Shown here piece after piece: positions 10 to 32,000 of a DNA stretch of 32,000 nucleotides. The DNA lies in contig NW_008806274.1 of NCBI RefSeq assembly GCF_000400465.1, positions 720,244-752,243 on the forward strand, given 5' to 3'. The DNA comes from Wallemia ichthyophaga EXF-994 (Eukaryota; Fungi; Basidiomycota). The notes beneath the pieces are model-generated. The model searched no databases. It saw nothing but the letters and a program-made list of their open reading frames with translations, and was not told the DNA's origin. Each line of letters opens with the position of its first letter. Position 1 is the stretch's first letter. Made by a program: the position numbers and the translations under genes.

Positions 10-3000
10 ATGATGTCAAGGGACAAAAGCAAATTGCTGTTCGATCCCAAGCGACATGATCCAGTAAAATTCAGTAATAATCATTTAAATAAAAAGAAGT
101 CAAGCGATGGCCATTCGCTGGGCCAGTCCATCTCCACCACCTCCTCCACCGTCGACGACTCCTTCTCCAGAGATCACTACAAGGATAAAGAAAAGCAGCG
201 TAAGAAGCGTAGGGATGCTCGTTCGCAGAGCAGCCACGAGTCGAGATCTTCAAACAATTCAAACTCAAATTCAAAGAAATCAAAGGATGAGCCGGCGTCG
301 GCGTTTTTAGTCCAGTTGAAGCGCGCTTATAGAGACATAATGGATACAGAGAACAAGCTAATCGATGAACGTAGAATGGCGATCACTTCCTCTACCAAAA
401 TATCCCTTTTCGGCCAAAACCCGGGGAAATCGAACGACGACTTGAATTGGATACGCTTGGTTAACAAGCACAAATCTCTTGCCGACGCTTATCACAGCTT
501 TCTTGCTACTTCTCTCGCTCCCCACACCCCAACTTCCCTGCACGCCCTGCCCCAGAAGTACAACATCCCCACAAGACTCTGGCAGAATGCTTTCCATGGC
601 CTGCTCGAGAAAATGAGGAGTGGGCTGAATCCAAAAAACCCCAGCTCTATTCTAGACCATCTCAGCGACTTTGTCTATCACGCGTACGCCTTCTATACCA
701 ACCTACTAGAAGAACCGGTTCTGTCGCCATTCAAAGCAAGCTGGATTGAGGCTCTCGGAGATCTAGCGAGGTATAGAATGGCTGTAGCATCCATCGAGTC
801 CACAGTTTCCACCGGTAACGGTAGTAGTAGCAGCCCGTATTCGCTACCTACCACTTTTGCCACTCCAGCGCCACCCACACCTTTCCAGGCACGCGTAGAT
901 GACTCGCAGCCAGAGATGCCACCTCATGCCGATGTTGCCAGCGTTGGTTTGCCAGCGTTGATGTCTGGTGGTTTTGATGTTGAGGACAGACACCTATGGA
1001 GGCAGGTTGCGCGCGACTGGTATGGCCAAGGGCTTCGAGATATGCCAGGTTGGTTGCTTCTACCACGCTAACACTCGCACTCATTCAACTACAGGCACTG
1101 GTCGACTGCAACACCACCTGGGTGTCCTTTGCAGGAATTCGCAGGACCCCGATGAGGGATTGCGAGCGCTATACCATCTCTGTAAAGCACTCACAACCTC
1201 CCACCCCTACCCCACTGCTCGAGAGACATTGCTTGGTCTGTTCGACCCCGAGCTGCAGAGTGCGCGAAAGAGGGAGGAGAGTGTAACTGAGCTCTTTACA
1301 CACGCACACGGACTGCTCTTCACGCGTGTCGAGCTGGATAGCTTTCCTCAAGCGCACGAGCGTCTCGTTGCACATCTCCAAGCTAAGCGCGCATCATTGC
1401 CCGATTCGGTGTGGATCATGATGGGCGTGGTGAACATAGCAAGTTTGCTGCAATACGGGCAGGATGACAGTGTTCTAAAACGTACCGCGGCTGCGACAGA
1501 TGACGGAGCGAAGCGACAGAAACAGCTTCACACATCGACTTCAAACCCTTCTCTCAACTCGGGCGGCGCTTTCAGTGCGCTTAGCTCCCCAGTCCCACCC
1601 GTGCCAGCATTACCGCAGGCGATCATGATGCATTCGAATAACAGGACAGGCAGTAACCCCAATCTCAATCTCATGTCGAGCAGTCCCAAATCAAGTCACT
1701 CGTTGGAGAATCTCAACAACTTCAATAACAGACCAGCCTCCAGCGCCAGCACGCGATCAGGTGGTGGCGACGACGATGTGCTCCTCGCGCTGAATAAGGA
1801 GGGCGTCAGCGAGGAGTATAGCACATCCAATACGGTTTTCGAGCATGCGCAGGAGATGACGTTCAGTATATTCGCTCTCCTCCTCCAGAAGCCTACTACG
1901 ACTAGAGAGGGAGGTGAAGGAGGGGCACCACTTAACCCATACATCACGATCGTGATGACGTATCTGACGACGATCCTTAAGCAGCCGACTGCGCTTTCGC
2001 TGCTCGAGAAGAAAATTCCGTGGGTTGAGTTAGCGATGTGTCTATCGCGCACCTTCCCCGATCGCACATCGCTAGAAAAGGGGGCCAAGACAGGCAACTT
2101 GAACGGTAGTGGTAGTAGTGGTAGTGTTGCGAATGGGCTGCCACAGGGACCGCAGCTGTCGCGCCTCGTCGCCGGCACGCCTCTCCCCGAAGATTGGTGT
2201 TTACGAGGCATGGAGTGGGTGGGGCGAAGAGTGTACGAGCGAGGGTTCTGGAAGACGCGTACGGGCGCATCAAGCACCGGTGCCAGCTACTCTGGTGCAC
2301 CTCCGCCTGTATCTGGATCTGCCATCCAGTCCGAAATGGACGTTCTATCCACTCACATGAGCGGGGTGCCCAGCGGTGCAAACGCTTCCGCACAGGATGG
2401 TCTCGACGGCGTGATCGAGAGTGACGACGATGACGATATCGATAGTATTGCTCGTCTGCGTCTCGATGGTGACGATGGAGCTTGCGCATCTTCCGATTTG
2501 GACTCACCGCTCAAACTCGCTGAGAGACGTCTGGCGCGGCTGGCATTCACCAGTACTGTGCTGGCGCGATTGGTGCAAGGCTTCGATATAGTCAGCTTAG
2601 ATAAGGAGCTCGGCCACTCTGACGCTGTCGAGTTTACCATCACGGGCGAACTGCAAGCCAAGATGAAGCGGTGGAGACTCGCCGAGGAGAGAAAGCGCGA
2701 GGATGAACTTCGCAGGTTGGAGGAAATCTACCAACATAACAGCGACAGTGCTAGCGATGTCGATTCCGATGCTTTCTCTGATATTTCCTCGCTCAGCGAG
2801 GCGATTAGTGGCGGTGAGAATGAGGATGAGGATGAGGAGCTGCGCCAGCTCAAATTGCGCAGGAGGGAGCTCAAGTCTCTAGTCAGAGAGCAAAAGGAGA
2901 AGGAGAGGGAGGCGCAAGCGAATGTGAACACCTCCAATAATCTCAACACCCTCAATATGCTCAATACCATACAACCGTCACTGACTACACTCATTTTCGA

Positions 3001-3692
3001 CACCAACGTCATGCTCTCTTCGATTGAGTATGTGCAGGCATTCGTCGAGAGCGGCGCTTGGGTGTGTGTGGTTCCGCTAGCTGGTAAGTTTGCTTGTGTT
3101 GCGGTAATCCTCTTACACTCCCCCCAGTCATCACGGAGCTGGATGGTATATCTAGAACAGATAACGCCCTCGGCAACGCTGCTATAGTCGCGACGTCGTA
3201 CTTAGATGGAGCAGTTGAGCGCAGCAACTCACTCAAGGTGCGATAGGGCATTTGCTCTGTATTTCTTTCTCACGCTCATCCTCGCAGATCCAGACATCGA
3301 AGAACAACTTCCTGAAAGACCTCACGATGAGGTACGAGGATTACGGCAGTGGTGGCGACATGGATGGGTTTGAGGAGAGGAAGACGCTCGATGATGTAAT
3401 TCTCGACGCTGCCAAGTGGCACAAGGAGAATTGGATGGAGCGGGAGAGACACTGGGAGATGCGTGAGCGTGAGCCTAAGGTTGAAGGCCAGGTGAATGCG
3501 TTCAGCCTCAACTCACCACCTACCTCACCACAGTTATCCGCTAAGCCAGCTATCCCAACCAAGTCTACTTCAAAGGTCGCGCTTATAACCTACGATCGCA
3601 ATTTGCGTCTCAAGAGTCATGCAGCAGGCGTGACTTCGGTGGACGAGAGTGCCTTCGCAAGGCTGTACAAGAACCATTACGGGAATAGCTGA
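10..3692 (+). CDS. EST1/SMG5-6-7 family protein (Est1 TPR/14-3-3-like domain plus C-terminal PIN nuclease domain), SMG6-like
   Basis: Exons 10-1048, 1095-3083, 3128-3237, 3288-3692 (GT-AG introns of 46, 44 and 50 nt; ~1180 aa). Splicing restores the Est1 motifs WIEALGDLARYRMA, W...AR.WY and PGTGRLQHHLG, then LPEDWCLRGMEW and the PIN motifs FDTN, VITELDG, DDVILD and TYDRNLRLK. The frame is open to base 1, so the start may lie upstream. Confidence 0.85.
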
Positions 3693-5505: not shown

Positions 5506-6078
5506 ATGAGCGTGCTGGGTGGGTGTATTAATTGAGTGCCGGGAGCAATCCAATCTCATTATAAATCCAGATTACGCAGGTGGGTGGTGTAGAGTAGATA
5601 GTAGAATCATCACTCAACATCACGGCACAATCATTAGATCGGAGTGGGTTGGGGTTTTAACGCGTATTAATCCCATCTAACGCGCCTAGTAATCTACTCT
5701 GATCGATACTCAGACGATTTCTTCGAATACAGACACGTTATCCTTCCCAAGCAAGTTCTGCGCCTTCTCCCGAGGCAGTACTTTGAAGCGGACGACAGCG
5801 GCGTATTGCGCATACTCACAGAGGCTGAGTGGAGAGGCATGGGCATAACCCAGTCACTGGGTTGGGAGATGTACGCGACTCACGGTGAGTGGAAACGTCT
5901 GGCTACTCAACACACACGTAATTTGCTTTTACAGCCCCAGAACCGCACATACTGCTGTTTAGAAGGGAGAAGGATTATCAAGGAAAAGTATGTCGTCTAC
6001 TACAGCCACGAACGCCTCTCTAACCCTCATTCTCAGTATGGTATCGAAGGCAAACCCCTTCACACTAGAAAAAAGTAA
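5506..6078 (+). CDS. CKS1: Cyclin-dependent kinase regulatory subunit (Cks1/Suc1)
   Basis: Exons 5506-5518, 5571-5579, 5638-5643, 5690-5884, 5935-5987, 6037-6078 give 105 aa: [30 protein letters not shown]...[41 protein letters not shown]... The CKS signatures [14 protein letters not shown] and [12 protein letters not shown] are clear. The gene is largely missed by the ORF track. Confidence 0.93.
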
Positions 6079-6271
6079 TTGTATCTCGTCTCGCATTTAA
6101 CAAAATTTTCATCCTTTCAGACATTATCAGATTATCAGACATATATACATATCTCTAGATATACAAAGATAAGACATGTAAGATATTTGAAACATTCCCG
6201 GTTATCACACGCCAGCGACACGCCCGCACGCGTAACACGTAAATACCATTCATTCCCATCCACCTCCCATC

Positions 6272-9228
6272 ATGACAGACGTCGGTGGAATGACAGATTT
6301 GAACAGACTGAATTTGAGGCTCAAGTGTCTCGATCTCTGTCACTTGAACAGATCGATCAATAGCGCTGTCCTAACTCCCCGCGGCTTCATTCTTCTCGCT
6401 GCGTCTGACACGCTATTCTGTCTCCCACTGAAATCGATTGGGCAGCCTCCACGCGTCTTGATCAAGCGACTTAAATCTGCTCACTCTATTTCCATTCTCC
6501 CCCTCACCAGCGTTATATTGATTTCCACCGATAATGCAACGCGATACTACGATTTGCGTCAAGTTGAAAAATCTTGTTTGCAGCTGTGGGACATGTCTAC
6601 GGGGCAGGTGAACGTGTTGCCTGATCTGCGCACTCCTGCTCCACCCGCGCTGCAAGACGGCGAACTCAACCATCTAACACACCTGCCGCCACCCACTCCA
6701 ACTAGTCCCCCTTTCTCCATTTCCCCTAGTATGCCCGATATCTCAGCCTCTACAAATTCTCCAGCGCTGCCCCCTTTACCCTTTCAAATTGAGGAGAATA
6801 GCAGTTTGTTTGGTGGTGCTGATGGTGGTGCTGATGTTGGTGCTGATAGTGCTGCCACTAGCCCTGCTCCTAGTCCTGCTATCAGTGCTGCTCCCTCGCC
6901 GTTCCACCCAGACACCCAAACTACGCCCATCCACCAGCGCAGAAAAGCAAGACAGCCACCGACACTCAACACAGTCAACACACCACACGCTCAATCCACT
7001 CAGCCCCACGTAGACGGGCATGCACGCTCACGCAGCGAGGACTTAACGCCGCTGACCAGCGACGTAGTGAAGCGGGAGTTAGAGCGTGTGCATATTCGGA
7101 ACAATCGAAGCAAAAAAAGCGCTGCGAAGCTAACACACAAGAATCTCAACGACATAATCCACCCAACCATTCTACGCGTAGGCGAGACGAGTGAGCTGAG
7201 CTACTTGGCAGTCCTTTCGCTCACGCTACCTGACAACGACACGCGACAACCCGCAGACCAAACGACAGTGTCGTTGTTTGCGGGCACGCAGCATGCCCCT
7301 CTATCCCTCGTCAAGGCTTTCATCCTCCCCGATCGCCCTGTCGATTTGCAGCTGTCGATCAAGGGCGACGACATGTCGGAGATTATCCTCGTCTACGACA
7401 GAAGTATTTTCGCTCTCAACCCGTTTTCGATTAACGTGCGCGAAATCAAAGTTGGCAGGGGTGGTAGACGGCGGAGGAACCAAAACGGGCATAGCAACGG
7501 TGAGAGGGACGGAGAGACGCAGGGCGGAGGAGCACATGGCGATAGCACACGCTGGTCAACTGAGTTAGCTAATCAAGGAGGGGTGCAAGATACGCGCGTA
7601 GTGGATATGGGTGTTGGTGTGGGCGAGACGGCACCGACGCGCGTGTCAATGTCAGTGCACGGAGGACAGAACGATCCTATACCTACAGAGCACTCTTCCA
7701 ACTCACTCGCATCGACCATCCTCGCTAACAACTCTTATACCAACTTCACGCCTCCGTTGATCGATACGAATGGAGCCAACTTGAGCAACACGACGCACCC
7801 AACAAACTCAAACTCAACACACTCAACGCCCACGCGACGCACATCAAGCAGATTCGGCGGACTGAGCAGGTGGACGAGTATGCTACAGCGGCCATTCCAG
7901 CCGCGCACATCAAGCAATGTGCTAGGGAGCCAAAGCCAGAGTGATACAGTACAGGAAGACGCAACGACACCAACAGTCTCACCTGAGACGCGCAAGACCA
8001 CCATTAACCCCCACTACACCACCCTCGTCCAACTGCACCAAACGCCGCCTCTTCCACCCGCTGCCCTCGAGAAGATGTTTACCATCCCTCCCCGCTATGA
8101 CGAGCTAGAAGCTCAGCGCAGTCGGAGTGTTTTTATGAACAAGACAGCGTCGCAGCTTTCGGCGCGCAGCCACCACCATGATGATCTGCGCAAGTGCTGG
8201 CACTACCTCGATCCACGCGGCACTGAGCATGGTTAGTTGATTTTTGAGTTTGGGTTTACCGAGCTAACACATTCGTAGGCCCATGGAGTACGAAAACAAT
8301 GCAAAACTGGTACACGAGCCGACGCTTTCTCAGCAATCTTCCTATTAGACATGAGCGAATGCGTTATCACAAAACGCTAACTGAGCTAATAGCGCAGTTC
8401 GGTGCAGAAAACCCATTTGTAGTGGCACTAGGAGCTGTACTGCAGTACTCACCAGCGGACTCACTCAAGAGCCTCGATCCTCCTACTCCCCTCCTACCCC
8501 CCATTTCCCTCATCAGCGATCCTGCTCTACCGCGTACTGGCGCACAGAGCATCTATCTCGCCGCTCGCCGTTACCTACCCACTATGCTAATCGACCACAA
8601 CGGCAGATCTATCGTGCGCGGCAGTGGTATACGCTGGGTTGGGAGTGGGTACAGTGATGGAGGTGAACACACAGACGCAGAAACGAATTCCGATGACGAT
8701 ATCAAACACTTTGAAATGATTTCTACTTCAGACGATAACACCACCGCCGCACTCGTCGCTATTCGCCAGCGCAGCTTCGAGGTGATCGATATTGCTGACG
8801 CCCTCCTCGGCCACCCCTCCGAGAGGGAGAAGGCATTGCCGGGGTGGGAGCGGCATATGTGTCGGGCGGGTGTGAGTCGGCCGTACGTTCACAAGCTGCA
8901 CAAGCACCGTAGAGACAGACGCGATCTAAATGCGGAGACGGCGCGCGGACGCAGTTATTCACACCCGCGTTATGTGAATAACGGAGTGAGTTCGAGTGCG
9001 AATGGAAGTCGCGCAGATCTGAGAAGCACATTATTGGATTCGCAGCTTCAACTCCCCTCAGAGTCACACAGTCGCGCCCATCTCCCCCACTCAAACTCAA
9101 ATTCAGACGGCGACGCTGTCCGCCTCATCTACATCGGCAGACAGGCACAGGCACACAGCGAGACGGTGTACTTGCTCGAATCGTACAGCGACGGGAATGT
9201 GCGGATAGTTATATTGTGTAGAAAGTAA
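6272..9228 (+). CDS. Uncharacterised protein with CNH-like beta-propeller segments and a GYF-type domain
   Basis: Exons 6272-8231 and 8279-9228 (47-nt intron GTTAGT..GCTAAC..TAG; ~969 aa). The splice junction creates WHYLDPRGTEHGPWSTKTMQNWYTSRRFLSNLPIR, which matches the GYF-domain pattern. Beta-strand-rich CNH-like blocks lie at the N-terminus, in the middle and at the C-terminus, separated by S/T/P-rich linkers. Confidence 0.6.
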
Positions 9229-10775: not shown

Positions 10776-11714
10776 ATGTCTGTCGCAACTCAACCACCAA
10801 AGACCAAGGACACAAAGGCCTTCCTTACTGATTTCATGATGGGTGGTGTCTCCGCCGCTGTCTCTAAGACCGCAGCAGCACCAATCGAGCGTATCAAGCT
10901 CCTCGTCCAAAACCAAGACGAGATGATCAAGCAAGGCCGTCTCTCTTCCCCTTACAAGGGTATTGGTGACTGCTTCGGACGTACCTACAAGGATGAGGGT
11001 CTTGTATCCTTCTGGAGAGGTAACACCGCCAACGTTATCCGTTACTTCCCAACCCAGGCACTCAACTTTGCCTTCAAGGATTACTTCAAGTCCCTCTTCG
11101 GTGCTAAGAAGTCTGACGGATACTGGACCTGGATGGCTGGTAACCTTGCATCAGGTGCTGGTGCTGGTGCTTCATCCCTCTTGTTCGTCTACTCTCTTGA
11201 CTTTGCTCGTACTCGTCTCGCAAATGACGCTAAGTCCGCTGCCAAGGGCGGTGAGCGTCAATTCAACGGTTTAGTCGATGTCTACAAGAAGACCCTCGCT
11301 TCCGATGGTCTCGCTGGTCTCTACAGAGGTTTCGGTCCATCAGTTGTCGGTATTGTTGTTTACAGAGGTCTCTACTTCGGTATGTTCGACTCTTTGAAGC
11401 CAGTTTTGCTTCAAGGTTCATTGTCAAACTCTTTCCTCGCTTCCTTCTTGCTCGGTTGGGGTGTCACTACTGGTGCTGGTTTGGCTTCATACCCACTTGA
11501 CACCATCCGTCGTCGTATGATGATGACCTCAGGTGGTACTGGTCCTCACTACAGATCTATGATGCACGCTGCTGCTGAAATCACCAAGACTGAAGGTACC
11601 TCTTCCTTGTTCAAGGGTGCTGGTGCCAACATTCTTCGTGGTGTCGCAGGTGCTGGTGTTCTTTCCATGTACGACAAGCTCCAAGAAATCCTCTTCGGTA
11701 CCGTTTACAAGTAA
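10776..11714 (+). CDS. AAC: Mitochondrial ADP/ATP carrier (adenine nucleotide translocase)
   Basis: 312-aa uninterrupted ORF with [33 protein letters not shown] and the RRRMMM signature. Strong codon bias typical of a highly expressed gene. Confidence 0.98.
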
Positions 11715-13137: not shown

Positions 13138-14307
13138 ATGGCAGCGACTACAGAGGAATACAAATTCACTTGCCAGGGATGTGGATTAGCGTTTAACTTA
13201 GCAGAGGATCAGAGAACACACTTTAAATCAGATTTACATCGTTATAATATGAAGAGAAGGGTAACCGCACTTCCTCCAATTTCTGCAGAACAATTCAAGC
13301 AAAAGTTCGTAGATAATACATCATCAAAGCCAACAACTGTACAAGTAAAGCCAAATCACGTTAAAGAGAAGAATTATAAACCTGCAAAGCCAGCTAAAGA
13401 TGTTCAAATGGTGGATGATAACCCTCAACTCAGTGAAGAAGAAATTTATCAACAAAGATTAAAATCTAGATTGAGCTCTTTAGATTGCTTATTCTCTAAT
13501 GAGAAATTTGATTCTGTTCAGGATAACGTGAGGCATATGGAACACAATTTCAGCTTTTACATCCCAGATAGGGAGTTTATTGACAATTTGGATGGTTTAA
13601 TACAGTATTTGGCTGATAAGGTTTCTATTGGTCACACTTGTTTATTCTGCAACAGATCTTTCACCTCTCTCGACTCGATAAGGAAGCACATGCTCGATAA
13701 ATCTCACAATAAGATTGCCTATGATCTTCCTGAAGAGAAGGATGAAATTTCTGACTACTACAACTTCGATGTTGACCACTCTTCTACCCAGAATGACGAG
13801 GGCTGGGAGGATGATGAAGATATTCAGTCAGGCGACGAGGATGAAGTGGTCCACCAGGATGAAACTAAGGAAGAGGGTGATGTTCACTATGGTGACACTC
13901 CTTTCGAATTGGTCTTACCTTCTGGAAGGAGAATTGGACACAGATCGATGCAACTTTACTACAAACAAAGACCAATACAGACTGAACTGACGGAGAAGAA
14001 ACACGATAAGCAGGCTGTGACGCATAAAATGTCAGACGACAACGCACTCATTCCTGCTAAAGGTTCTGGCTTCGGTGCGTTCGGCCAGGGCCAACAAATT
14101 ATTCAGGCTCCTCACAAGGGTGATGCCAAGCTTGCGAAGAAGGCCACAAGACAGGCTAGGGATGTGCAGAAGAGAGAGCAGTTCAAGACAAAGGTTGGAT
14201 ACAAACACAACAACCAGAAACAGTGAGTCCGATAAAATTTTCCACTTTTCCACCACACCCCACTAACCACACACCTACACAGCTTCCGTGATCAACTGCT
14301 TCAATAG
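13138..14307 (+). CDS. REI1: Cytoplasmic pre-60S maturation factor Rei1/Reh1 (ZNF622 family, C2H2 zinc fingers)
   Basis: Exons 13138-14222 and 14283-14307 (369 aa). Motifs FTCQGC..HFKSDLHRYNMKRRV, HMEHNFSFYIPD, CLFCN..HMLDKSH and LVLPSGRRIGHRS. The intron restores the conserved C-terminus NNQKHFRDQLLQ. Confidence 0.93.
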
Positions 14308-14404: not shown

Positions 14405-15669
14405 ATGCTAAGTGTCAATACCAACACAAGATCGTACCACCTTCCTGGACGATCACATTCACCATCCAACTCAATGTCGAATATCAACGAGAGAGACAGC
14501 CTTCTACCAGGCCAGCCCCGCAAAACGCACGCAGAGTCATTCAAGTGGCTGATTAAATCTGGCTGGCAGATAAATTTGCTGCTGGTCTTCGTACCGCTCA
14601 GCTTCCTTTCACATTTCCTGCAATTAAATGACAAGCTCATTTTCATTTCCTCTTTCCTCGCTATTATCCCACTAGCAAAGCTTCTCGGGGATGCCACCGA
14701 GCAAGTCGCGCTTAAGCTCGGCGATACGCTTGGTGGGCTTCTCAACGCGTCATTTGGAAATGCCGTTGAGTTGATTGTCGGTATCGTCGCACTCAATCAG
14801 GGACAGTTGAGAATTGTGCAAACGTCAATGCTTGGTAGTATTCTCTCTAATCTTTTACTCGTCCTTGGAATGTCCTTCTTCGCTGGTGGTATTGCGTACA
14901 ACGAATCCGAGTTCCAGCAAACTGCTGCACAAGCATCAGCATCAGTTATGACCCTCAGTTGCATTACGTTGATTATACCTGCTGCTTATGAATCCTCATT
15001 CGGGAGGACATTCGAAGGCGAGCATGACGGACTGCTTATCATCTCCAGAGGCACTGCTCTCCTTCTCCTGCTTATCTACGGCGCTTACCTTTATTTCCAA
15101 CTAAAGACGCACGCTCATTTGTTTGATACTACATCAGAAGAGGAAGATGAGGAGCCTGAAATGAACACGACGGCAGCATGCGTCGCACTGCTTGTCATTA
15201 CTGTTATTACGTCATTCTGCGCTGATTACTTGGTAGGCACTATCGACACAGTAGCGCAGGAGTGGCATCTACCAAAGCCATTCATCGGTCTCATTCTCCT
15301 TCCACTCGTCGCTAATGCCGCAGAGCATGTAACGTCAGTGTGGATGGCATCTAAGGGCAAAATGCCGCTGGCTATTGGTGTATCGATTGGTTCATCGATT
15401 GTGGGTGAATTGTATTTTATAGGTGCAAATTACTAACAAACCTTTCAAAGCAAATCGCTGTATGTCTTCTGCCACTCCTTCTGGTCATTGGATGGATCAT
15501 AGGTCAGCCTCTCACCCTTTTCTTCAACAACTTTGAAACTGTTTCGCTATTCGTTAGTGTCCTCCTCGTCGCGCTCATTGTCCAAGATGGAAAATCCAAT
15601 TGGTTGGAAGGTGCCATGTTGGTTGTGTTGTACATTGTCCTAGCATTAGCATTCTACGTAACACCGTAG
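14405..15669 (+). CDS. VCX1: Vacuolar Ca2+/H+ exchanger (CaCA family)
   Basis: Exons 14405-15400 and 15451-15669 (404 aa). Alpha-repeats GNAVELIVG/GSILSNLLLVLG and ANAAEH..GSSIQIA, an acidic loop EEEDEEPE, and DGKSNWLEG. Confidence 0.93.
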
Positions 15670-19576: not shown

Positions 19577-21839
19577 CTACTCTTCATCCTCGTCCATTTC
19601 AACCTCCTCGTCGTCCTCATCGCCATCCTCCTCCTCAGCATCAGGCGCAGCCTCGAGATCGCTGTCATCATCCTTAATCTCCACCGACTGCGTGCGTTTC
19701 TGCTCTCTCGCCTTCCTCAATATCTTAACAAAAGCGCCGAGAGTGGTTGATTCAACTGAAGTGCTTTCCAAAAATCGATCAATCTGTCCTCTTTCACCGG
19801 GACTGAAGTCTATCTTGACTCTCTCATTCTCGATAAACTTAGCCTGTGCCTCCAGTCTCTCGACCAGTGACTTGAATTGACCGACAACTTTCTGTCCAGA
19901 AGGGCACTTTTTCATCGTTTTTCTGAGTATATGCACGACAGGTACGATCGATTCTGGGAACGCGATACTCGTGCCTATTGTCATGAATGCTTCTGCGAGA
20001 ATATATATGAGTTCATCCGCCAATTCCTCGACATAGACGCGAGTGCGACTGTACGACGTTGGTACTCTAATATAAAATTCAAAGTCTATAGGCTTCAAGG
20101 TGGACTTTTTAGGCGCGCGTTTGAATTCTGCAGATGAAAGTATCTCTAATAGCGGCGCTGAGATTGGTATGTACGCTCCGGTGCGCTGCTCCAGTCTCAG
20201 CAACGATCTCAGCATGTGGAAGCGCAGTGGGAAGTATCTCGAAGTTGGCACGAGACGCACAGCACCCAAACTAACCTGCACCAAAGGATAGATTAACGCT
20301 TGGAGTTCAGACTCAGGTGCTGTCTTGTCGTTCGCTAAGCTCAATACTAAGCTCCAGAAATCGACACAATGAACATATTGCCAATTGTATACCTGTTTAA
20401 AAGATTCTTTAATTTTAGTTTTCATTGATCCTCTGAGCAGTATCGCAAGTTGTCTTATGTAACCAAATGCTTGCTGATAGGATGCACCGTGGTCGAGTGT
20501 GTACAATTCCACAGCCGTGTTTTTCATGAGATTAATCTGTGGCAGGGTGTGAATGCTAGTTTGTTTGCATGCTCTGACGAATGTGAGGTATGTTGACTGG
20601 GAGGAGGTTTAATGAGACTTTTGTTGTAAGCAGTGTGCTCACCTTCAAAACTAGATCTACTACACTGGCATCACCAGCCAAGGCAATCTTGCGTACGGAC
20701 ATATACGCTGCGATACGAACACTATCGGTGGCGGAAGACCACAAATCGAGGAGAGTCTTGAGCAGAGACTTTATACCTTTCCTCCCACCGACTATGTATG
20801 GAATAATCTTACCAACCTCACTAACGGCGACTTTGAGAATACCGCCGTCATCTTCACTCTCCTCGTCGAGGTTGTCAGACGTAGCAGGGAAATGTGATAT
20901 CAAGTATAGGGCGCTGTTGACGTAGGTTGAGAGTAGCTTAGGGAGGATAGAGTTAGGGGATGGTGAGATTTTAAATCTACCATTATCGAGCTCCTTACAC
21001 GGCCAATGGTGGTTAAGGACTATGGGGGTGAATTTGAAAGTAGTGAGAATGACTTTATTGAAAAGATCAGCCGACTCGATGTCGTAAGTAAAGTTTTGAG
21101 ATTGCTTTTTAGGCATGTCTTCAAAGTCAGTTGAGAAGGCGGCAGATCTGAAGGCAAGGATGAGCTTTTTGAAGGACCTCAAGCTACGATGGTGGATGAT
21201 AGCCCTTTGCCAATCTCTGAGCATCTTTTTGGTAAGCTTTGTCGTAGATCTCTTCTTCTCGCCGTCAAATTCAGCTAAAGCAGCGGCCTCCTCGTCATCA
21301 GAATCCTCGGGTACGGACTTTTCATTCAGGTCATCCTGGTCATCGTCAGAGCCATTGAATTGTAACAATTCATTATCATTCTCCTTTAAGAATTTGTAGA
21401 ATTCTGGATCAGTTTTGCTGAGGTTTTTGATTGCTTCGGTGTGAGACTTTTCATCGAGTTCAGCGTCAGAGTTTTCAGCCTCAGCGTCTGAGACGTTAAC
21501 GCCTTCGGAGCCATCGGAGTCATCGGCGTCATCATCATTGTCATCACCACTAAGTTGCATATTGAGTACGTCGTCAACGTTTTGAGAGTGAGAGTGATCA
21601 GGGAGATCGTCATCCTCGCTTTCTTCAGCGTTTGAGTCAATCTCAGGTTGATTTGCAGAATCATTTGATTGGTCAGGGTTATTCTTATTCTTTGGCTTAT
21701 GATCCTTCTTTGCCTGGGCCTTCTTCTGTCTAACATCACGCTTATCCTTGACAGCTTTTACTTTCTTACGATTATCAAGCTGATTCTTTAATTTACCCGA
21801 TTGAGAGAATTTCTTTGTCTGTTTGCCCAATTTAGCCAT
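19577..21839 (-). CDS. NOC2: Nucleolar complex protein Noc2 (60S biogenesis)
   Basis: Exons 21839-20643 and 20596-19577 (738 aa). Motifs MAKLGKQTKKF, LSKTDPEFYKFLKENDNELLQF, YQQAFGYIRQLAILLR, VYNWQYVHCVDFWS and RYFPLRFH. Confidence 0.95.
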
Positions 21840-23405: not shown

Positions 23406-24653
23406 CTAGAATGATATATTGTCTTTGACACTTTGTTGGATTGCTGAGGTTGTTGAGTGTACATTTTCCCATATCACCCTCACCGCATAATCTGGTTTGT
23501 TCTCTTGAATTTTTTCATCTGAGACTTTGTTAAGGTGGCAGCATAAATCGGCTAAACTTGAACGCATTTGATTTTCATTAGAATCGCTAACCGATTCCTT
23601 CTGATAGCCAGCAACCTTGCACCACTCACCCTCCTCTTCACGTGACAGACACGCCATTCTTAGCGCCATCAGCGTCCTCTGCGATGGCCACGCAGGTGCA
23701 GGATACAGATGTAGAGTGTAGTCATCCCACAAATCATTCTCTTGCAACTGGTCTCTCTTCCAATCCTCTTTAATCAATTGTTTCACCAAATCACTAATGT
23801 TCACCTCTGTGAAAGCGTTCTTCTCCCACCCCAGCACAAAACCATACTCTGCGAGAAGAAAGTCATCACTATGAGGGCCATACATGAAACATATCTCTGT
23901 ATCTGGTGGTATAGTATGAGTTGAGTTATTAACAAGTTCATAACCGCCTTCGCGCAAAGGAATTTCAGGTTTTGGGAGGGCGTTGAAGAGGTTTGTAGTG
24001 TTGGGCGAGGGCGAGGAGTGATTGAGAAGGTCGAGATAGGGGCACAGAGAGAGCTGCGAATCTTTCTCCACGTCCTGGATTGGATAGTAGAGGCAGCGGG
24101 TGTTGACGACGAGCCACGCCCATTTGAACACCTCTGCGATTGGCTGTGTGTGTTTCTGTATCAGTAACTTTGACGCCTCGAAATGACTCCTAAAAGCCGC
24201 GAAATCACTCTCAAACCGGTGTGAGACATGTTCAACCAATTTTCGAACGTGGATGGGCAGCCTGTCTAGCTTCTCCTGTGGCCAGCACAATGGATGGAAC
24301 GAGAAATCGGCTGGGAGTGTATCGAGATAGGGCGATTCGAGACGCGTGCACTCCAAATCGCCCATTCTAAGCCGTGTGAGGTGAGAAGAGAGGATTTGGA
24401 AACTGGTGAGAGAGCGCGGATAGCGTTGTCGGATGGATTCAGACTCCACATTCAGCAAACACTGCTTGGGGATAAATAGAAAGACTTCCGCTGGCTTGTC
24501 GCGTGTAAGTGGGCATCAGCACAGCCAAACTAAACCAACGTGTACGTGGGTGCTGGTGAGGAGAGAGTATCCGCCGTGGCTTGTGAATTGCGGCCGTAGT
24601 GCAGTCACTGCACCGTAATCGGCCACTAAACTATCTTGGAATCGATCCACCAT
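23406..24653 (-). CDS. SET-domain protein lysine methyltransferase (Rkm2/SETD4-like)
   Basis: Exons 24653-24546 (or to 24540) and 24494-23406 (~398 aa). Motifs FIPKQCLLN, WAWLVVNTRCLY, LCPYLDLLNHS and FMYGPHSDDFLLAEYGF. Confidence 0.85.
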
Positions 24654-24739: not shown

Positions 24740-26775
24740 ATGTCCAATTCTCTCGAAACTGAAATCATGCCCGCGCCGCCGCCGCCGCCTGGGAAGCAGG
24801 GCAGCAATCTATACCACAAACTAGAGAAGTTAGAGGAAGCAAAGTGGGTTAAGGGGGATGATGAAGACGCCGCACCAGCTTACGCGCCACACAGTCCATC
24901 TCCCCCTCCCGAAGCGCGTGCGGGAGAAGGTCAAGGGGAAGGTGAGCGAGAGCGGGAGATGGAGCAGAAGCAGAAGCAGCAGCAGCGAGAAGGGGAACAA
25001 GGAGAAGCGATGCCATACAACGCCAGCGCTGTGATGCCGCAAGCGTATCCGGCGCGATATACCAAACCGAGCACATCGCTAGCTCCGCATGTGAAGAAGA
25101 GCGCGCGCAAGCAAACTCAAACTAACGCGCACACTCTCAACAACAATCATGAGTGGTGTGACGCGTGTGGAGGTGAAGGGCGCGTTATCATGTGCGATGG
25201 TTGCGACAGCTCCTTCCATGCTAGCTGCTTCGATCCTCCGATGGATATGGGCGAGGTGGAACTAGGCGAAGATGCAGCGTGGTATTGCCGCACTTGTGCA
25301 CATGCCAAAAGTCAATCTCACCCTCACTCCAACTCCAACTCCACCCAGCCATCCCATTGGGTTGGCCAGCTTTGCCATGCGCGCGATACATCCAACCCTA
25401 CGTCATTCAGTCTACCGGTGGGTATACGCAACTATTTCGTCGGCGGTAGGTGCCTCGATTGGGTTGCGATAACGCGCTAACTGTAAACACCACGCACAGT
25501 CGAAACAGCCCATGATGGGTCTTACTCCACTTCGAACGACTCGAAACCGGTGAAAACGGATCGTTTCGGCGCAGCGCTGACGGAACGCGAAGCATACCCA
25601 ACGCGAGACAAGAATGGTGGGGTAGTGAGGTGTTACAGGTGTCAAGGCACAGCAGCGCCAGCGTTGAGTGAGAGTGGGGATGTTGAGAGTGGCGGGAGTG
25701 TTAATAGCAATAGCAAAAGCAATAGCAAAGACACCCCCAATAATACCAGCAAACACAACACTCACCCACTCATCACCACACCATCTTCTACAAACGCAGC
25801 ACACACGCAATGGCGTAAAATGGTCAGCTGCGATTACTGCAACTGCTACTGGCATCTCGATTGCCTTTCGCCACCTATCACTCACATACCGTCGCTCGCT
25901 CGTATGTGGATGTGCCCTTTGCATGCCGAACATGCAAAATCGATGCATATGGAGGTGAGTATTTTTCTGGTCGCTCTTTCAGCAGACCTCAACTCACACT
26001 CACACTCACAATCCCACTCCTACTTACACCACCAAGATGAAAAACAGAATACCGAAGGAGCACGTAAAAGAGGTAAACAAGAAGTTGGAGAGAAGTGATA
26101 GCGTTACTTTTATAGGCAATAAAAGTAAACGCTCGAAAAAGTTGGATGACCGGCTTGATAAGGAGAAGTTTCACATACCGGAAAGGTCGATACAGCTGGC
26201 ATTTTGGGATAAGCTTTATGACAAGAGTGGGAGAAGGTCTAGGTAGGGGTGGTATTCTTGGTGGATATGAGTATGAGTGCTGATATAACAATACAGACTG
26301 AGCTACTCGAAATCATTCTTGGATGATGAACCAACTATCAACGCAGTAGATGGACTGATGGCGTTATCGAAGCCTACAGCGAGCGAGACACGGAAATTAG
26401 TGAGACGGGTAATGACGGGGAGAAGGGCGACATTGAAGGAGGTGAGTTGGTGGAGTGAATTGATACAGTTGATATTGACAATGAGCACAGGAAAAGAAGA
26501 GGAACCAAGAGGAGACAAAGAAAGAGATGAATACGATGAACATGCCTAATGCGACGAATACGACGAATAAGATGAATAACAAAGAAAGGGAAAGAGAGGG
26601 AGAAGGACAAGAGATATCAGATAGTAGCTCACTCAGTTCAGTGCCGATGAGTGATGATGAAAAAGAAAAGCCACCTCACTATGTGGATCATGCTCGGTAT
26701 AACAAGCTGAGTACGATAGAGAGGCTTTTGCATTTAAAAGGGGAGAAGGAGACAATAGAGTTTTTAAGTCAGTGA
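24740..26775 (+). CDS. Double PHD-finger protein, Rco1/Cph1-Cph2-like (Rpd3S/Clr6 HDAC complex subunit); 3' end uncertain
   Basis: Exons 24740-25445, 25500-25954, 26037-26242, 26297-26441, 26491-26775 (~598 aa). PHD1 is CDACGGEGRVIMCDGCDSSFHASCFDPP..WYCRTC; PHD2 is CYRC..CDYCNCYWHLDCLSPP..WMCPLH; also IPERSIQLAF. A further exon to 26845 or 27161 is possible. Confidence 0.78.
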
Positions 26776-27341: not shown

Positions 27342-28707
27342 ATGTCTTCGTGCGCGGGTTTAAACTGCGTGTCTACAAGCGCAACGATGCAATGTCCTAA
27401 GTGTAAGGATCTCAACATTTCTTCCTTCTTCTGCGGCCAAGACTGCTTTAGGAAAAGCTGGTCGAGCCACAAGACGGTGCACACACAGAACCAGCCCAGC
27501 CAACCCAGCCAAACTACAAACGATCCACATCTCCTCAAACTTGCGGCTGCTCTCCAGCAATCTGGCACCACCGGTATCGGCAAAGGCGAGCCTATCGAAC
27601 AAGGCGCATACGACCCAAATCCAAATCATCCATACACAGGCACACTTAGACCCCACTATCCTCTTTCTCCGAGGTCTGCTGTCCCTCAATCTGTTGCCCT
27701 CCCTGACTACGCTAAAGACGGTACGCTCAACCTCCTCAAAGCCACTTACGGGTGAGTGTTGACTGTCTTCCCTATGCAGGTTACCCACGCGGTGAAACTA
27801 GATTGGCCAAAGGTCTCGCTTCTGTAAAGAGGCTGTCCGAGGTGGAGATTGATACCATGAGACGCGTTTGCAGGGTGCGTGGTTCTTTGTCTCACTCTTT
27901 TTTTACATCCAAATCTAATTTTCTCTTCAGCTCGGCCGATACGTCCTTAATCAGACTGGAAACCAAATCAAGCCAGGTGTCTCCACAGACCAGCTCGATA
28001 AATACGTTCATTCGCTCTGCATGGCCAACAACGCCTACCCGTCTCCGCTCAACTACCATGGTTTTCCAAAATCAGTTTGCACCAGTGTAAATGAAGTCAT
28101 CTGCCACGGCATACCCGACAAGCGCAGACTGAAGCAGGGCGACATTATTAACCTTGACATAAGTCTGTTCAAGAATGGCTTCCACACGGATCTCAATGCT
28201 ACTTTCGCTGTTGGGGAGATAGATGGCGAGAGTCAGCGGCTGATCGACACTACGCGTAGAGCGCTCGATAACGCAATCGCCATCTGCAAACCAGGCACAC
28301 CATACAGGAACATTGGCGGGGAGATACAGCCGACTTGCGACGAGCAGGGCTTCTCAGTCGTCAAGACTTACACAGGTCATGGCGTTGGCAGAGAGTTCCA
28401 TCAGGCGCCAACTATCCTCCATCACTCCAATCTGCGCAGCAAGGGCGAGATGAAAGTGGGGCAGATATTCACTATCGAACCTATGGTAAATGCTAGCAAG
28501 AGCTACCATGTTGAACATTGGAATGATAATTGGACTGCTGTTACTCGCGATGGCGTTAGGAGTGCGCAGTTTGAAGAAGCTATTCTCATCACTGAGGGTG
28601 GTTGCGAGGTTCTCACTGCGGATGACGATTATTCTCCACCTGCTGACCATATCTCCATTCCCCATGTAAAGGCTGATGAGGGTGTTGTCACGATCAGTGA
28701 TATATAG
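27342..28707 (+). CDS. MAP1: Methionine aminopeptidase 1 with N-terminal zinc finger
   Basis: Exons 27342-27720, 27780-27874, 27931-28707 (416 aa). Zinc finger CPKC..FFCGQDCFRKSW..H, GFPKSVCTSVNEVICHGIPD, and metal ligands in NLDIS, HTDLN, GHGVG, TIEPM and AQFEE. Confidence 0.96.
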
Positions 28708-28792
28708 ACATTGACATGATTTTAGGGATTTGCGTATATAGATTTGTATATAGATGGATATTTCTGTGTATATAGACAGATGCATAGTTTTG

Positions 28793-30063
28793 TCATACCT
28801 CACTCCCTATGTAGGTATTCTCCACTCTCTCGAAATAGGGCTTGGCTAAGCGTATGTTCATCTGTATAGCAGATGGTGCTGTAAAGTAGAGTTAAATTAG
28901 TTTGTGCAACACGCACATACCCACGTATATCGATATTCTCCGTTATCACTAGTATGTATGTGTTGATAGTGAGCGGTTCGAGTACCGCGTTGTAGTCCAT
29001 CTCCGTCAGTTGCATTGAGTTGAATTGGTTGTTGAGCTTGGCGCACGACTGCTTGAATGCCTTGATAAGTTGCGATATCTGCTCGAATCTGTGCCTGGAT
29101 ATTGTGAGATTCCGGGTGGGTATGTGAGTGTATTGGTTGGGGTGGGAGTGGTGATGCTGGTGATGCTCCTGCTCTCGCTCCTGCTCACAATCGCAATCGC
29201 ACTCACATTCACACTCCCACTCATCACCACCCTCTAAATCCCACTCCTCGCCGTCCTTGCGCAGTGTCGTCTTCCCAATGACGAGAAAAGTGCTCCTCTC
29301 AAACAGCACCACCTCAGCAGCGTGTGTGGTACTAGCGAAGTGCGCCAATGCACTGCTCATCTTGCCCGACGACGGCAGCAACTTGGTAACTATCTTAGAC
29401 CACGCCTTGTACAGCGACTGATCCCATATGCTAGTCATGTAGCATTCCGTGTGTATGCCCGGTGTACCTCTTCCTGTGTCGAAGAGTGGCTGAAGGGAGT
29501 GAAGAATTTCAGCCTTGCGTCTGCTATACACTAAACAAGCGTCGTGTTTGGCGATAAGATCTGTTTTGTTAATGAGGATGAACAATCTGAGCGGGGTGTC
29601 GGAATTGGTGTCGCTGTCTTTCAAACACTGTAGACTTTGTATAAACCAGTCGAGCTCTTGGGATGCAGCGGATGGGGGAGTGGTGATGTCGAATACGTAG
29701 ATGAGAACACTGACGTTATGGTACAGGTGTGTGTCACTCCCACTCCCGCTTCCCCCTGAATCACAGATAAGCAGACTGAGTGAGTTGAGCAGCTCGAGTG
29801 GGTGGGAGTGTGACTGCGCATGCGACTGCGATGGAGATGGCGATGCGATAGAAGGGGATGCTTGAATATTTGAAGGGTGTTTGTTGCTAAGTGGGTGTCA
29901 GTGTGAGTTTGTGCGCCACCATTCAACACCAGACTAACAAAATAATAGACCTCATCGAAGCTTTACCAGCGCCTATTAAAAATTAGAGTTGGTCTATTGA
30001 ATTTATAGCAACGATCCACCCACCACTCTTTCCCATCAGCAGCACTTTCTTCATCTTCTTCAT
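28793..30063 (-). CDS. GTR1: Rag A/B-type GTPase Gtr1 with degenerate G1/G2/G3 motifs
   Basis: Exons 30063(or 30054)-30024, 29972-29939, 29886-28925, 28878-28793 (~373 aa, frame open throughout). RagA hallmarks are KKVLLMGKSG.GK.SMRSIIF, NVSVLIYVFD, TSIWDQSLYKAWSKIV, VVLFERSTFLVI, RFEQISQLIKAFKQSC and IQMNIRLAKPYFE. Confidence 0.9.
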
Positions 30064-30074
30064 CTTCACCGTCG

Positions 30075-32000
30075 ATGAACAACGACGACAACAGCGACTA
30101 CTGGGCGTATATCGCAGGCATAAGAGATCTGGGCGTGGGCGGGAGCACATCCACTCACCCGACCCAACACATCACCCAGAGCAGCACCAGTAAACAAGAT
30201 AACTCTGAAAGCGATGCTTCTGGTGAAGATGACGTTGAATTGGATTTGGATTTAGATTTAGATTATACGCGTGTGACCCAGCAGCCAGCTCACTTGGCTC
30301 ATCCACATCATCCACCCACCCAAATGAGCCACAACGACGTAGAATCGCGCAACCAGCGTGAAAGTCGCATCAGAAGCGATCTCACCACCGCCAGTGCCTC
30401 TTACATAAACGAAACGCTCAACCAGCGCACCAAACGCGACAAACAGGGCTCGAATCCGAAACGCGATGCAGGTAGTTCGGGCGACGCGGATAACGGAGTT
30501 GATAACGCAGGTAACAACAGAAATACTAGCACAAACAGTGGACACAGTCTACGCTGTGCTTATTGCTTGGGCGACTACGCGTATAATAACAAGACGCAGA
30601 GACAAGAAGCTATGGTGACATGTGCACGCTGTGCGAGTAGTGGTGGGTAGCACCGTAGTTGATATCACCCGATTTCTAACAACCCCCAAAAACAGCTCAC
30701 CCTACCTGTTTGCACTTCACACCTACCCTCACACAAAACGCTCAGGCATACGACTGGTGTTGCGTCGATTGCAAAGGGTGCGAGGTTTGCAGACATAAAG
30801 GAAACGAGGATGATATCATCTTCTGCGACTTATGCGATCGTGGTTGGCACATGCATTGCTTGAGTCCTGCCATCACTCAACCCCCACCGGGTGATTTTGC
30901 CTGTCCTGTGTGTAGAGGTGTGTCTTATCAGCAGCGGGTTGAGGAAGAGGAAGATAAAAGGAGAGAGGAAGAGAAGGAGAAGGATAAAGAGAAAGAGACA
31001 TTGATAGCACAGTCTACTTCCCCTACAAACACCAATCACACAACGAAACATACCACTACAAACCCAAGTCTCCCACACCACACCTCACAATCACCTCTAG
31101 CTCTACAACTCCAAATGCAGCTGCAGAATCCAACGCTCGCCCCAACTTTCCAACCTCCGCCGCCAATGCACGACAACCAACCAACACCGCGACAATCAGC
31201 AACCATCCTCAACGCTAGTAAAGCAATGCTGATGGGAAGACAGACACTGCCGCACTCACTTCTCCCTCAAACGCCCGATTTAAGCACTGTGGTTCCCACT
31301 GAGACACCACTCAAAAGAGGCAGAGGTAGACCACCAAAGAAAGTGCAGGATGGCCCATTAGGTACTCCTCACTTATTCAAGGATAAGCCTGATAAACCTA
31401 AAAATCCGGTTGGGAGGCCACCAGGACCGAGAGCGTCACTAAGTGCTCCCAAGAGAATAAACACTTTTGTCGTTATCGATAATGATGAAGATAAGCTTGT
31501 GGAGAAGGAAAAGAAAGAGAGGGATGAGAGAGAGGAGAAGGAGAAGGAGGAGAAAATTGATATGGGAAAAAAGAAACATGCTGAGAATATGCAGGTGGAT
31601 GGCCAACCACATAAGCAAGAACATCGACAATCACCTTATCCAGAGACTCGGGACGACTCAGGGCAGCAGCCGATGGAGGGTGTGGATACTGCTGAGAGTG
31701 CTGCTCCATCTGCACCTGTTGAACAGTCTTATAGGGAAATGCAGCAACTCCAGCAAATCTCCCAAAAAACCCTCCAACAACCTCCTCATCCACACCATAT
31801 TAACAGTGAAGACAAGGAGAATGAGCACGACACAGAGGATAATGACCCATTTGGTGGTGTGCTCAAACCCGATGAAGCCCAAGTGCTACATACGACCCCA
31901 CATGCGGAAGAGAAGAACAAATTTGAAATTACACGCAGAAGAGCTGAGGTAGGTTTCCAGTTTGCTTTAGCTTTCCCTTACATCCCGACTAACAACCACC
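30075..32000 (+). CDS. Double-PHD-finger (DPF) and AT-hook chromatin protein, probably a Sas3/MOZ-type MYST histone acetyltransferase (5' part; truncated by the window end)
   Basis: Exons 30075-30642 and 30696-31948, then an intron donor GTAGGT at 31949. Contains a DPF (CAYC..CARC..HPTC..WCCVDCKGCEVC..FCDLCDRGWHMHCL..CPVC), AT-hooks KRGRGRPPK and VGRPPG, and DPFGGVLKPDEA..FEITRRRAE, which I recall as the segment preceding the MYST domain in fungal Sas3. The MYST domain itself is not in the window. The long second exon is absent from the ORF track. Confidence 0.7.

Follow-up and report, generated by a model that had tools for sequence, protein, structure and literature searches.

Can a fungus retain its apparently sole RagA-type subunit while the nucleotide switch of that subunit is taken apart? 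The question is raised by a gene of the obligately halophilic basidiomycete Wallemia ichthyophaga EXF-994, located in a 32,000-nucleotide stretch of contig NW_008806274.1 (positions 720,244–752,243; referred to as the window, to which all coordinates refer) and encoding a member of the Gtr1/RagA family. It is assumed that a Rag heterodimer requires a RagA/Gtr1 subunit that cycles, and the residues lost in W. ichthyophaga are the very ones on which GATOR1/SEACIT acts. An original prediction from the sequence described this protein as a Gtr1 with all nucleotide-switch motifs degenerated, possibly a scaffold that no longer cycles. The reading favored here, to which a probability of roughly 0.5 is assigned, is that the gene is a single, still-selected Gtr1/RagA orthologue, the nucleotide switch of which has been disabled stepwise, leaving a non-cycling partner of Gtr2.

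The lesions in the switch are rare within the family. Approximately 270 Rag-family proteins, the matches listed by two protein searches, were placed in one hidden Markov model (HMM) alignment, in which 193 sequences cover the GTPase motifs G1, G3, and G4; W. ichthyophaga is present twice in this set, as the gene model from the window and as the NCBI protein P0001. The motifs quoted by the original prediction, GKSGAGKAS, ICDSGGS, and NKTD, are all present. The P-loop, GKSGAGKAS, comprises residues 11–19 (30033–29956) and is split by intron 1. The GxxxxGK frame and Lys17 of the G1 consensus GxxxxGK[S/T] are kept, and Ala18 occupies the Ser/Thr position. This position is Thr in 174 of the 193 sequences, Ser in 16, Leu in one, and Ala in two, both from W. 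ichthyophaga. The catalytic Gln of G3 is found in 188 sequences and is replaced by His in one, by Thr in two (L001, from Logan assembly SRR25399871 with Gtr1 at about 5677–6856, and L002, which like L003 is an ENA metagenome contig), and by Ser in the two W. ichthyophaga entries. The Trp of G3, present in 179 of the 193, is also lost. Compared with a consensus of WDxGGQ followed by a switch II of 20 residues, W. ichthyophaga has CDSGGS and 13 residues. Switch II is 20 residues long in 198 of 208 sequences and 13 residues long in W. ichthyophaga alone, such that the predicted shortening by about seven residues is borne out and is shared with no other of the 208.

Switch I is altered in a less straightforward manner. 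Its Thr is absent from the HMM alignment; a codon-level alignment, in which TCA AAT ATT CAA GCA TCC CCT TCT ATC (SNIQASPSI) faces TCA AAC GTA CAA GCC ACG CTG TCT ATT (SNVQATLSI), pairs Ser35 (QAS) with the Thr (QAT), and over its full length pairs SNIQASPSIAS of W. ichthyophaga with SNVQATLSIQS of the relatives. The switch I Thr has therefore most likely become Ser35. A 4-residue deletion lies before this segment and a 12-residue insert after it; RRLG of switch I is gone in all Wallemia. The proposal that switch I had been replaced by low-complexity sequence thus holds in part: the insert is real and RRLG is missing, but the Thr has most likely become a Ser and the loss of RRLG is genus-wide.

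The remaining motifs are not degenerate. G4, which had been listed among the lesions, reads NKTD, the canonical NKxD; its first position is His in 180 of the 193 sequences and Asn in 11, the other Wallemia species among them. G5, TSIWD, is unchanged, as predicted. Intact are thus G4, G5, both conserved residues of DxxG (Asp and Gly), and the P-loop frame together with Lys17, and the description of all motifs as degenerated was an overstatement. Elsewhere in the family, a RagA-like Logan protein, P0281, has the P-loop GKSGSGKLS, in which Thr is replaced by Leu as in the laboratory mutant T21L, together with MDCGGQ; its Mg2+ site, too, may have been damaged in nature.

Predicted structures locate the damage in the same part of the protein. 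AlphaFold2 (AF2) was run on an 80-sequence alignment; the models lean on canonical homologues and have no direct bearing on nucleotide binding. The W. ichthyophaga model has a predicted template modeling score (pTM) of 0.77, and its predicted local distance difference test score (pLDDT) exceeds 90 from β4 to α5 and in the roadblock domain, which displays the roadblock-type alternation of helices and strands. A pLDDT below 50 is observed for residues 28–50 and for most of residues 244–286, the linker insert. Strand β2 is vestigial, and the switch II helix consists of residues 77–80 alone. In the W. mellicola control, calculated from the same alignment, full β2 and β3 strands and switch II helices (62–77) are observed, and no segment of the G domain falls below 50. 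The GTPase fold is kept in the W. ichthyophaga model according to both AF2 and Foldseek, the top Foldseek matches being S. pombe Gtr1 (8fw5_D) and RagA (6u62_B), each with a probability of 1.0 and a template modeling score (TM-score) of ~0.8 (target-normalized). The roadblock domain overlays with the RagA C-terminal domain chains 5x6v_F and 6ehr_F with a target-normalized TM-score of 0.91.

The linker insert is composed of in-frame hexamer and nonamer tandem arrays (Tandem Repeats Finder, 29149–29223). Including this one, in-frame arrays (CTCACA, AGCAGA, GAGAAA, and others) are found inside coding regions of several genes at 29149–29223, 25988–26019, 24963–24986, and 30941–30998, where they encode repetitive peptides (ECECECDCDC, SHSHSQSHS, and EREREME, among others). 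The gain of low-complexity inserts by replication slippage thus seems to be a general feature of the W. ichthyophaga genome, one that Gtr1 would tolerate at two surface sites.

The gene is the Gtr1/RagA orthologue of W. ichthyophaga, as established by synteny, domain structure, and fold. Residues 6–235 score 149.8 bits with the Pfam family Gtr1_RagA (PF04670), for which the curated cut-off is 22 (E = 1.1e-43). Among PDB entries, RagA (1.2e-46) and S. pombe Gtr1 (4e-45) are matched far more closely than RagC (3.6e-07) or Gtr2 (5e-07), and residues 289–366 match the RagA C-terminal domain at 1e-13. The gene order MYST – Gtr1 – MetAP is common to W. mellicola, where the gene is named raga, to L001, L002, and L003, and to five further W. 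ichthyophaga strains. The family assignment of the original prediction is confirmed by these scores and by the orthologous locus.

The gene also appears to be the only one of its type. With canonical W. mellicola Gtr1 as the query, the matches listed include four Wallemia clusters, one per lineage, and no second W. ichthyophaga Gtr1 protein, in a database with more than 20 annotated genomes of the species. A tblastn search of the whole window with the canonical N terminus revealed no second copy, and a six-frame scan of 28701–30400 revealed no exon that would restore GKT or WDCGGQ; the two findings that would have undone the prediction, a canonical paralogue and different exons, are thus absent from the matches listed and from the locus. 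In the accessible part of Table S1 of Zajc et al. (2013), PF04670 is assigned to two proteins of the W. ichthyophaga reference proteome. These are taken to be Gtr1 and, from the count, a putative Gtr2. The same part, which ends 679 rows before the table does, has no entry for NPR2, NPR3, IML1, Folliculin, or Raptor_N, from which nothing follows about their presence. Gtr1 is therefore apparently the sole RagA-type subunit gene in W. ichthyophaga, as judged from these searches. A RagA-like protein of 507 residues attributed to the oribatid mite 'Medioppia subpectinata' (P0005) matches W. mellicola Gtr1 at 2.7e-87, better than any basidiomycete orthologue (~1e-76); contamination of the mite assembly by a fungus, or fusion of two genes in its annotation, may be the reason.

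These data bear on the possibility that the degenerate motifs are an artefact, whether an error of assembly or annotation, a lesion specific to one strain, or a decayed duplicate beside a canonical Gtr1. Public models of the gene do differ at the start codon and at the 3′ end. The same sequence and motifs nevertheless recur in the window, in the independent assemblies of five strains, and in ten protein variants (~21 accessions), introns and gene order match those of relatives, the locus offers no alternative exon, and neither a second Wallemia-type nor a canonical copy is found among the matches listed, in agreement with the Pfam count of two in the part of Table S1 available. An artefact is extremely unlikely.

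The switch has also evolved at a different rate from the rest of the protein. Pairwise Nei–Gojobori ratios of nonsynonymous to synonymous substitution rates (dN/dS) by domain, a check suggested with the original prediction, are 0.11–0.18; the proportion of synonymous differences (pS) is 0.5–1.0 and dS is saturated between species, and these ratios were dropped as evidence for that reason. Tajima relative-rate counts with five basidiomycete outgroups and three-taxon branch lengths, with the neighboring methionine aminopeptidase (MetAP) gene as the control for the latter, were used instead. In the block from G1 to switch II (81 alignment columns), 13.6 unique changes are counted for W. ichthyophaga and 2.4 for L001 (p ~0.004). 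The corresponding counts are 4.0 and 1.4 in the rest of the G domain and 4.0 and 2.6 in the roadblock domain, neither of which is significant. The ratio of the W. ichthyophaga branch to the W. mellicola branch is 2.6 for the N-terminal block, ~1.05 for the other two blocks, and 0.8 for MetAP. The acceleration is confined to the G1-to-switch-II block. The remainder of the G domain changes at the rate of the genus, and so does the roadblock domain, which had been predicted to be well conserved and evolves no faster than in relatives by either measure.

Within the species, frame and motifs are kept in all ten protein variants (~21 accessions) and in all six DNA haplotypes, namely the window and the five independently assembled strains, and the gene can be regarded as fixed. 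No frameshift, premature stop, or lost splice site is found in any of the six haplotypes (0/6), and all insertions and deletions in Gtr1 are in frame or intronic, as is the 4-nt CACC insertion in intron 2 (29896–29897) of strain GCA_004918895.1 (L010). Across the 5.7-kb region aligned for these haplotypes, 53 alignment columns vary, counting single-nucleotide polymorphisms and indel positions. Coding polymorphisms in Gtr1 are five nonsynonymous and three synonymous, compared with one and five in the MetAP exon, numbers that are too few for a test; four of the five nonsynonymous changes lie inside degenerate or inserted segments. The pattern fits a switch region that drifts while the core is held, with the same reservation about the size of the counts.

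Alternatively, the Rag branch could be dispensable in a slow-growing obligate halophile, with Gtr1 in early neutral decay and its frame still open for want of time. The excess of nonsynonymous polymorphism over that in MetAP (5/3 vs 1/5), the tolerance of two slippage-type inserts, and the loss of the catalytic Gln already in the sister lineage are compatible with such decay. It is difficult to reconcile with an acceleration limited to 81 alignment columns, beyond which conservation of the second G-domain half and of the roadblock domain matches that in relatives, with the untouched G4 and G5, with the placement of four of five polymorphisms in segments that are already degenerate, or with the absence of stops and frameshifts from six haplotypes, every indel being in frame, in a gene that has three introns and repeat-prone inserts. 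Neutral decay is improbable as the explanation.

Relatives of W. ichthyophaga suggest the order in which the switch was lost. Gtr1 of W. mellicola is wholly canonical, with GKSGSGKTS, QATLSIE, WDCGGQ, and NKMD. L001, L002, and the W. hederae protein P0385 have WDCGGT, with Thr in place of the catalytic Gln, and are otherwise canonical. L002 and a W. hederae protein fall into one 90% cluster, and WDCGGT is carried by W. hederae and by a relative with 87% identity to it, which may be W. peruviensis. The published phylogeny makes W. ichthyophaga and W. hederae sister species, with W. peruviensis near W. hederae (PMC6027281). The simplest history for these sequences would be replacement of Gln by Thr in the common ancestor of the halophilic clade, followed by Thr to Ser and the other lesions in W. 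ichthyophaga alone. A neighbor-joining tree of the gene places W. ichthyophaga outside (W. mellicola, (L001, L002)) with bootstrap values of 64–95%; were it right, Gln would have been lost twice independently. This placement conflicts with the published multi-locus tree and with the MetAP distances, which fit the published Wallemia tree, and was set aside as long-branch attraction.

This order invites two further explanations. In the first, the change from Gln to Thr to Ser froze the active conformation, Gtr1 signals 'amino acids present' to TORC1 constitutively, and the later changes are secondary. The Gln was indeed replaced first in the clade, when the rest of the switch was canonical, and Gln substitutions such as gtr1Q61L are the standard GTP-locking Rag mutations. 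The P-loop Ala, the broken switch I, and the short switch II argue against tight binding of Mg-GTP and against the GTP conformation, however, and S. pombe cells fare as badly with the GTP-locked form as with the deletion (PMC5752196), which leaves a GTP-locked mimic very unlikely. In the second, the switch was dismantled in two steps, with Gln lost in the ancestor of W. ichthyophaga and W. hederae and the Mg2+ site and both switches lost thereafter in W. ichthyophaga; a permanently off-like Gtr1 paired with Gtr2 would constantly damp TORC1, and the SEACIT/GATOR1 input would be obsolete. This proposal is doubtful.

The consequences of the lesions for the favored reading, a non-cycling Gtr1, can be considered residue by residue. 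In Ras, an Ala in the P-loop lowers the affinity for Mg2+ and for nucleotide. The P-loop hydroxyl is a Mg2+ ligand, and Rag or Ras proteins that lose it are held in the GDP-bound or nucleotide-free form; Gtr1 of W. ichthyophaga thus probably no longer cycles between GTP and GDP. Substitutions of this hydroxyl are the standard GDP-restricted mutants of Rag and Ras, and the Gln is the standard GTP-locking position, as in S. pombe gtr1Q61L (PMC5752196). The loss of the hydroxyl, of the catalytic Gln, and of a third of switch II, combined with a disordered insert in switch I, would abolish a cycle controlled by SEACIT/GATOR1. Guanine nucleotide could still be held, either weakly, in a Mg-independent manner, or as a structural cofactor; weak binding rather than an empty pocket is expected because the P-loop Lys, DxxG, NKxD, and TSIWD survive. 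Pairing with Gtr2 would occur through the intact roadblock domain, and Gtr1 would be a constitutive partner in a GDP-bound-like or empty-state-like form, serving as a scaffold or attenuator of TORC1 and leaving regulation to Gtr2 and to Rag-independent inputs. With its catalytic and Mg2+-binding residues mutated in a retained predicted GTPase fold, the protein is a candidate pseudoGTPase. The non-cycling scaffold of the original prediction is therefore upheld as far as Gtr1 identity, an open and fixed gene, the lack of a paralogue among the matches listed, and the roadblock domain are concerned, and is qualified by the retention of G4, G5, DxxG, and the P-loop Lys; the uncoupling of amino-acid sensing from TORC1 that it also proposed is speculative. 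Gtr1 is not among the differentially expressed genes that are given with sequences in Table S6 of Zajc et al. (2013).

Several observations count against a Gtr1 that does not cycle. The kept NKxD, TSIWD, DxxG, and P-loop Lys would be expected of a protein that binds nucleotide, and Ser35 could stand in for the switch I Thr. In Rap GTPases, Thr61 is found in place of the Gln and a catalytic Asn is supplied by the GTPase-activating protein (GAP); by analogy, Thr or Ser at the Gln position need not abolish GAP-assisted hydrolysis. The polymorphism ratio of 5:3 hints at relaxed constraint, the dN/dS values given above come with saturated dS, and the state that Gtr1 would mimic, whether GDP-like, empty, or GTP-like, is a guess.

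Some of these observations would be accommodated by a GTPase switch that still works with unusual chemistry, in which Ser35 serves for the Thr, water or Ser19 serves for the residue lost at Ala18, SEACIT supplies the catalytic groups, and the kinetics and partner surfaces have been retuned. The intact GxxxxGK frame and Lys, the Asp and Gly of DxxG, NKTD, and TSIWD, the conservative nature of the most likely Thr-to-Ser change in switch I, the existence of a sister lineage with Gln replaced by Thr alone and an otherwise canonical appearance, and the ordinary rate of change in G-domain residues 85–235 all speak for such a switch. Against it, Ala at the Mg2+-binding Ser/Thr is observed in none of ~190 other Rag proteins, and GDP-restricted forms of Rag and Ras are routinely made by mutating this very residue (PMC5752196). 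The 7-residue deletion in switch II and the 12-residue disordered insert at β2 remove the parts that sense the γ-phosphate, and the switch I insert of RagB-long is by itself enough to leave almost no GTP binding (PMC9481464). A working switch of this kind is a tentative possibility.

The exon model that underlies the non-cycling reading was obtained by enumerating all GT..AG splice combinations with Rag homology as the criterion. A single model is open and Rag-homologous throughout, on the minus strand from 28793 to 30063, with four exons that encode 373 residues and introns of 51, 52, and 46 nt. P0001 is of equal length (373 residues) and differs from the window model at one residue. All three introns are matched in position in three other Wallemia genomes, the genes of which were spliced by hand, and the open frame and clean introns described in the original prediction are thereby supported. 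In other Wallemia Gtr1 genes the start lies at the position of the second Met (MKKKVLL) in exon 1 of W. ichthyophaga. The features of the locus are collected in Table 1.

Table 1. Coordinates of the Gtr1 gene of W. ichthyophaga, its motifs, and its neighbors in the window
Feature	Position	Strand	Basis or remark
Gtr1/RagA orthologue of W. ichthyophaga	28793..30063	-	4 exons, 373 aa, stop codon included
Exon 1, encodes MKKMKKVLLMGKSG	30024..30063	-	Splice enumeration
Intron 1, 51 nt, GTGGGT..AATAG	29973..30023	-	Position and phase as in three other Wallemia genomes
Exon 2, AGKASMRSIIF	29939..29972	-	Carries P-loop Lys17 and Ala18
Intron 2, 52 nt, GTTAGT..CTTAG	29887..29938	-	Splice enumeration
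Exon 3	28925..29886	-	Splice enumeration
Switch I remnant SNIQASPSIAS, residues 30-40	29841..29873	-	Most likely pairing; manual codon-level alignment to L001, L002, W. mellicola
12-residue Ser/Pro/His/Gln-rich insert PSPSQSHAQSHS, residues 41-52, strand β2 region	29805..29840	-	In no relative
G3 ICDSGGS, residues 65-71	29748..29768	-	DxxG Asp and Gly kept; Trp→Cys, Cys→Ser, catalytic Gln→Ser
Shortened switch II, 13 residues GSGSDTHLYHNVS vs 20	29709..29747	-	HMM alignment
G4 NKTD	29559..29570	-	Canonical NKxD guanine-specificity motif, kept
G5 TSIWD	29421..29435	-	Kept (HMM alignment)
Linker low-complexity stretch, residues 240-276, G domain to roadblock	29133..29243	-	~24 residues extra vs other Wallemia
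Roadblock (C-terminal dimerization) domain, second conserved block to exon 3 end	28925..29096	-	RagA match, pLDDT >90
Intron 3, 46 nt, GTGGGT..TTACAG	28879..28924	-	Splice enumeration
Exon 4, PPSAIQMNIRLAKPYFERVENTYIGSEV + stop, last helix of roadblock domain	28793..28878	-	Splice enumeration, RagA match
MetAP (Peptidase_M24) large exon, convergent neighbor	28021..28707	+	Synteny marker, rate control
PHD/MYST acetyltransferase first exon, divergent neighbor, ATG 11 nt from Gtr1 ATG	30075..30650	+	Synteny marker

Public gene models at the Gtr1 locus conflict with one another (P0128, P0123, and P0125 of W. ichthyophaga and P0385 of W. hederae). The reference-strain model of W. ichthyophaga starts at Met10 and some strain models start at Met4; one W. 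ichthyophaga model of 503 residues runs on into the antisense strand of the MetAP gene, and P0385 starts at MRSIIF and retains intron 3. The product is annotated variously as 'hypothetical protein', 'GTP-binding protein', or 'Ras-related GTP-binding protein A'. Just 11 nt separate the Gtr1 start codon on the minus strand from that of the PHD/MYST acetyltransferase on the plus strand (ATG at 30075), such that the 5′ untranslated regions of the two genes must overlap head to head. The core of this interval, CATCGACGGTGAAGATG, is near-identical in four Wallemia lineages (window 30063–30077, L001 5665–5679, L002 185–199, and L005 5989–6003). Other large open reading frames lie at 10–3187, 10776–11714, 13138–14226, 14405–15436, 19577–21839, and 23406–24458; inspected by eye only, they are housekeeping-like and include what could be an ADP/ATP carrier-like protein, a zinc-finger protein, and a cation exchanger-like membrane protein. 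No gene of the TORC1 pathway was recognized next to Gtr1 among these reading frames, which were judged by eye and without a family search.

Should Gtr1 of W. ichthyophaga indeed be non-cycling, a free-living fungus would provide a natural experiment in which the main switch of the Rag module is frozen. It would allow a test of whether the fission-yeast logic, in which GDP-bound Gtr1 attenuates TORC1, holds more widely, and would show how Gtr2, the GAP, and the partners resembling guanine-nucleotide exchange factors evolve together after their substrate has ceased to cycle. Biochemists would find ready intermediates in the series from W. mellicola (canonical) through W. hederae (Gln lost) to W. 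ichthyophaga (switch dismantled). On the two-step account of the loss, the most halophilic fungus known would carry a natural equivalent of gtr1-S16N, and no free-living eukaryote before it would be known to run the Rag module with a pseudoGTPase as the sole RagA-type subunit. A link between the loss of the switch and the very slow growth of the fungus when water activity is low is conceivable. If cycling instead proves normal, then the P-loop hydroxyl, the Gln, and the length of switch II are less essential in Rag proteins than has been assumed.

No paper that links Wallemia with Gtr1 was found in the literature searched. Comparison can be made with Rag proteins and GTPases of other organisms. 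Similar to canonical Gtr1/RagA of S. cerevisiae, S. pombe, and human, Gtr1 of W. ichthyophaga belongs to the same family, has a G domain followed by a roadblock domain, adopts the same predicted fold, lies in the orthologous locus, and retains G4, G5, DxxG, and the P-loop Lys. The main differences are the Ala in the P-loop, the Ser in place of Gln, a switch II that is seven residues shorter, a switch I that lacks RRLG, most likely has Ser for Thr, and carries a 12-residue insert, and a linker insert of ~24 residues.

The lesion in the P-loop affects the same hydroxyl as the laboratory GDP-restricted or nucleotide-free mutants S. pombe gtr1-S16N, RagA T21N/T21L, and the Gtr1-S20L class. S. pombe gtr1-S16N has wild-type-like growth and starvation response, requires Gtr2, and bypasses the loss of GATOR1 (PMC5752196), which indicates that a fungus can live with a non-cycling Gtr1, there an attenuator of TORC1. 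These mutants are single engineered changes to Asn or Leu, whereas in W. ichthyophaga a natural, fixed Ala is combined with the loss of Gln and the remodeling of both switches.

The WDCGGT motif of W. hederae and its relative parallels Thr61 of the Rap GTPases. Rap differs in being rescued by a GAP that supplies Asn; SEACIT/GATOR1 supplies an Arg finger, and we know of no GAP compensation of the Rap type for Rag proteins.

PseudoGTPases such as AAGAB and the microsporidian ArlEM likewise keep the fold, have mutated catalytic motifs, and are presumed to act in protein–protein interactions. In the scheme of Stiegler and Boggon, class i pseudoGTPases also lose G4 and G5 and bind no nucleotide, whereas G4, G5, and the P-loop Lys are all present in Gtr1 of W. 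ichthyophaga. Should this protein be a pseudoGTPase, its motifs make the nucleotide-binding, non-hydrolyzing kind more likely. No Rag orthologue of that kind was found in the literature searched.

The closest natural parallel among RagA/B-type proteins may be RagB-long, which also has an insert in switch I. This mammalian brain isoform, described as a near-pseudoGTPase, carries a 28-residue insert and displays very low GTP binding, almost no GATOR1-stimulated hydrolysis, and weak binding to Raptor (PMC9481464). RagB-long is a splice isoform that exists beside canonical RagA and RagB, acts as a sponge for GATOR1, and keeps both the P-loop Thr and the Gln, whereas the Wallemia protein is apparently alone. 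Compared with RagB-long and with the laboratory mutants, what would be new in W. ichthyophaga, as read from its sequence, is a natural, fixed, and apparently sole RagA-type subunit that has been hit at several sites at once.

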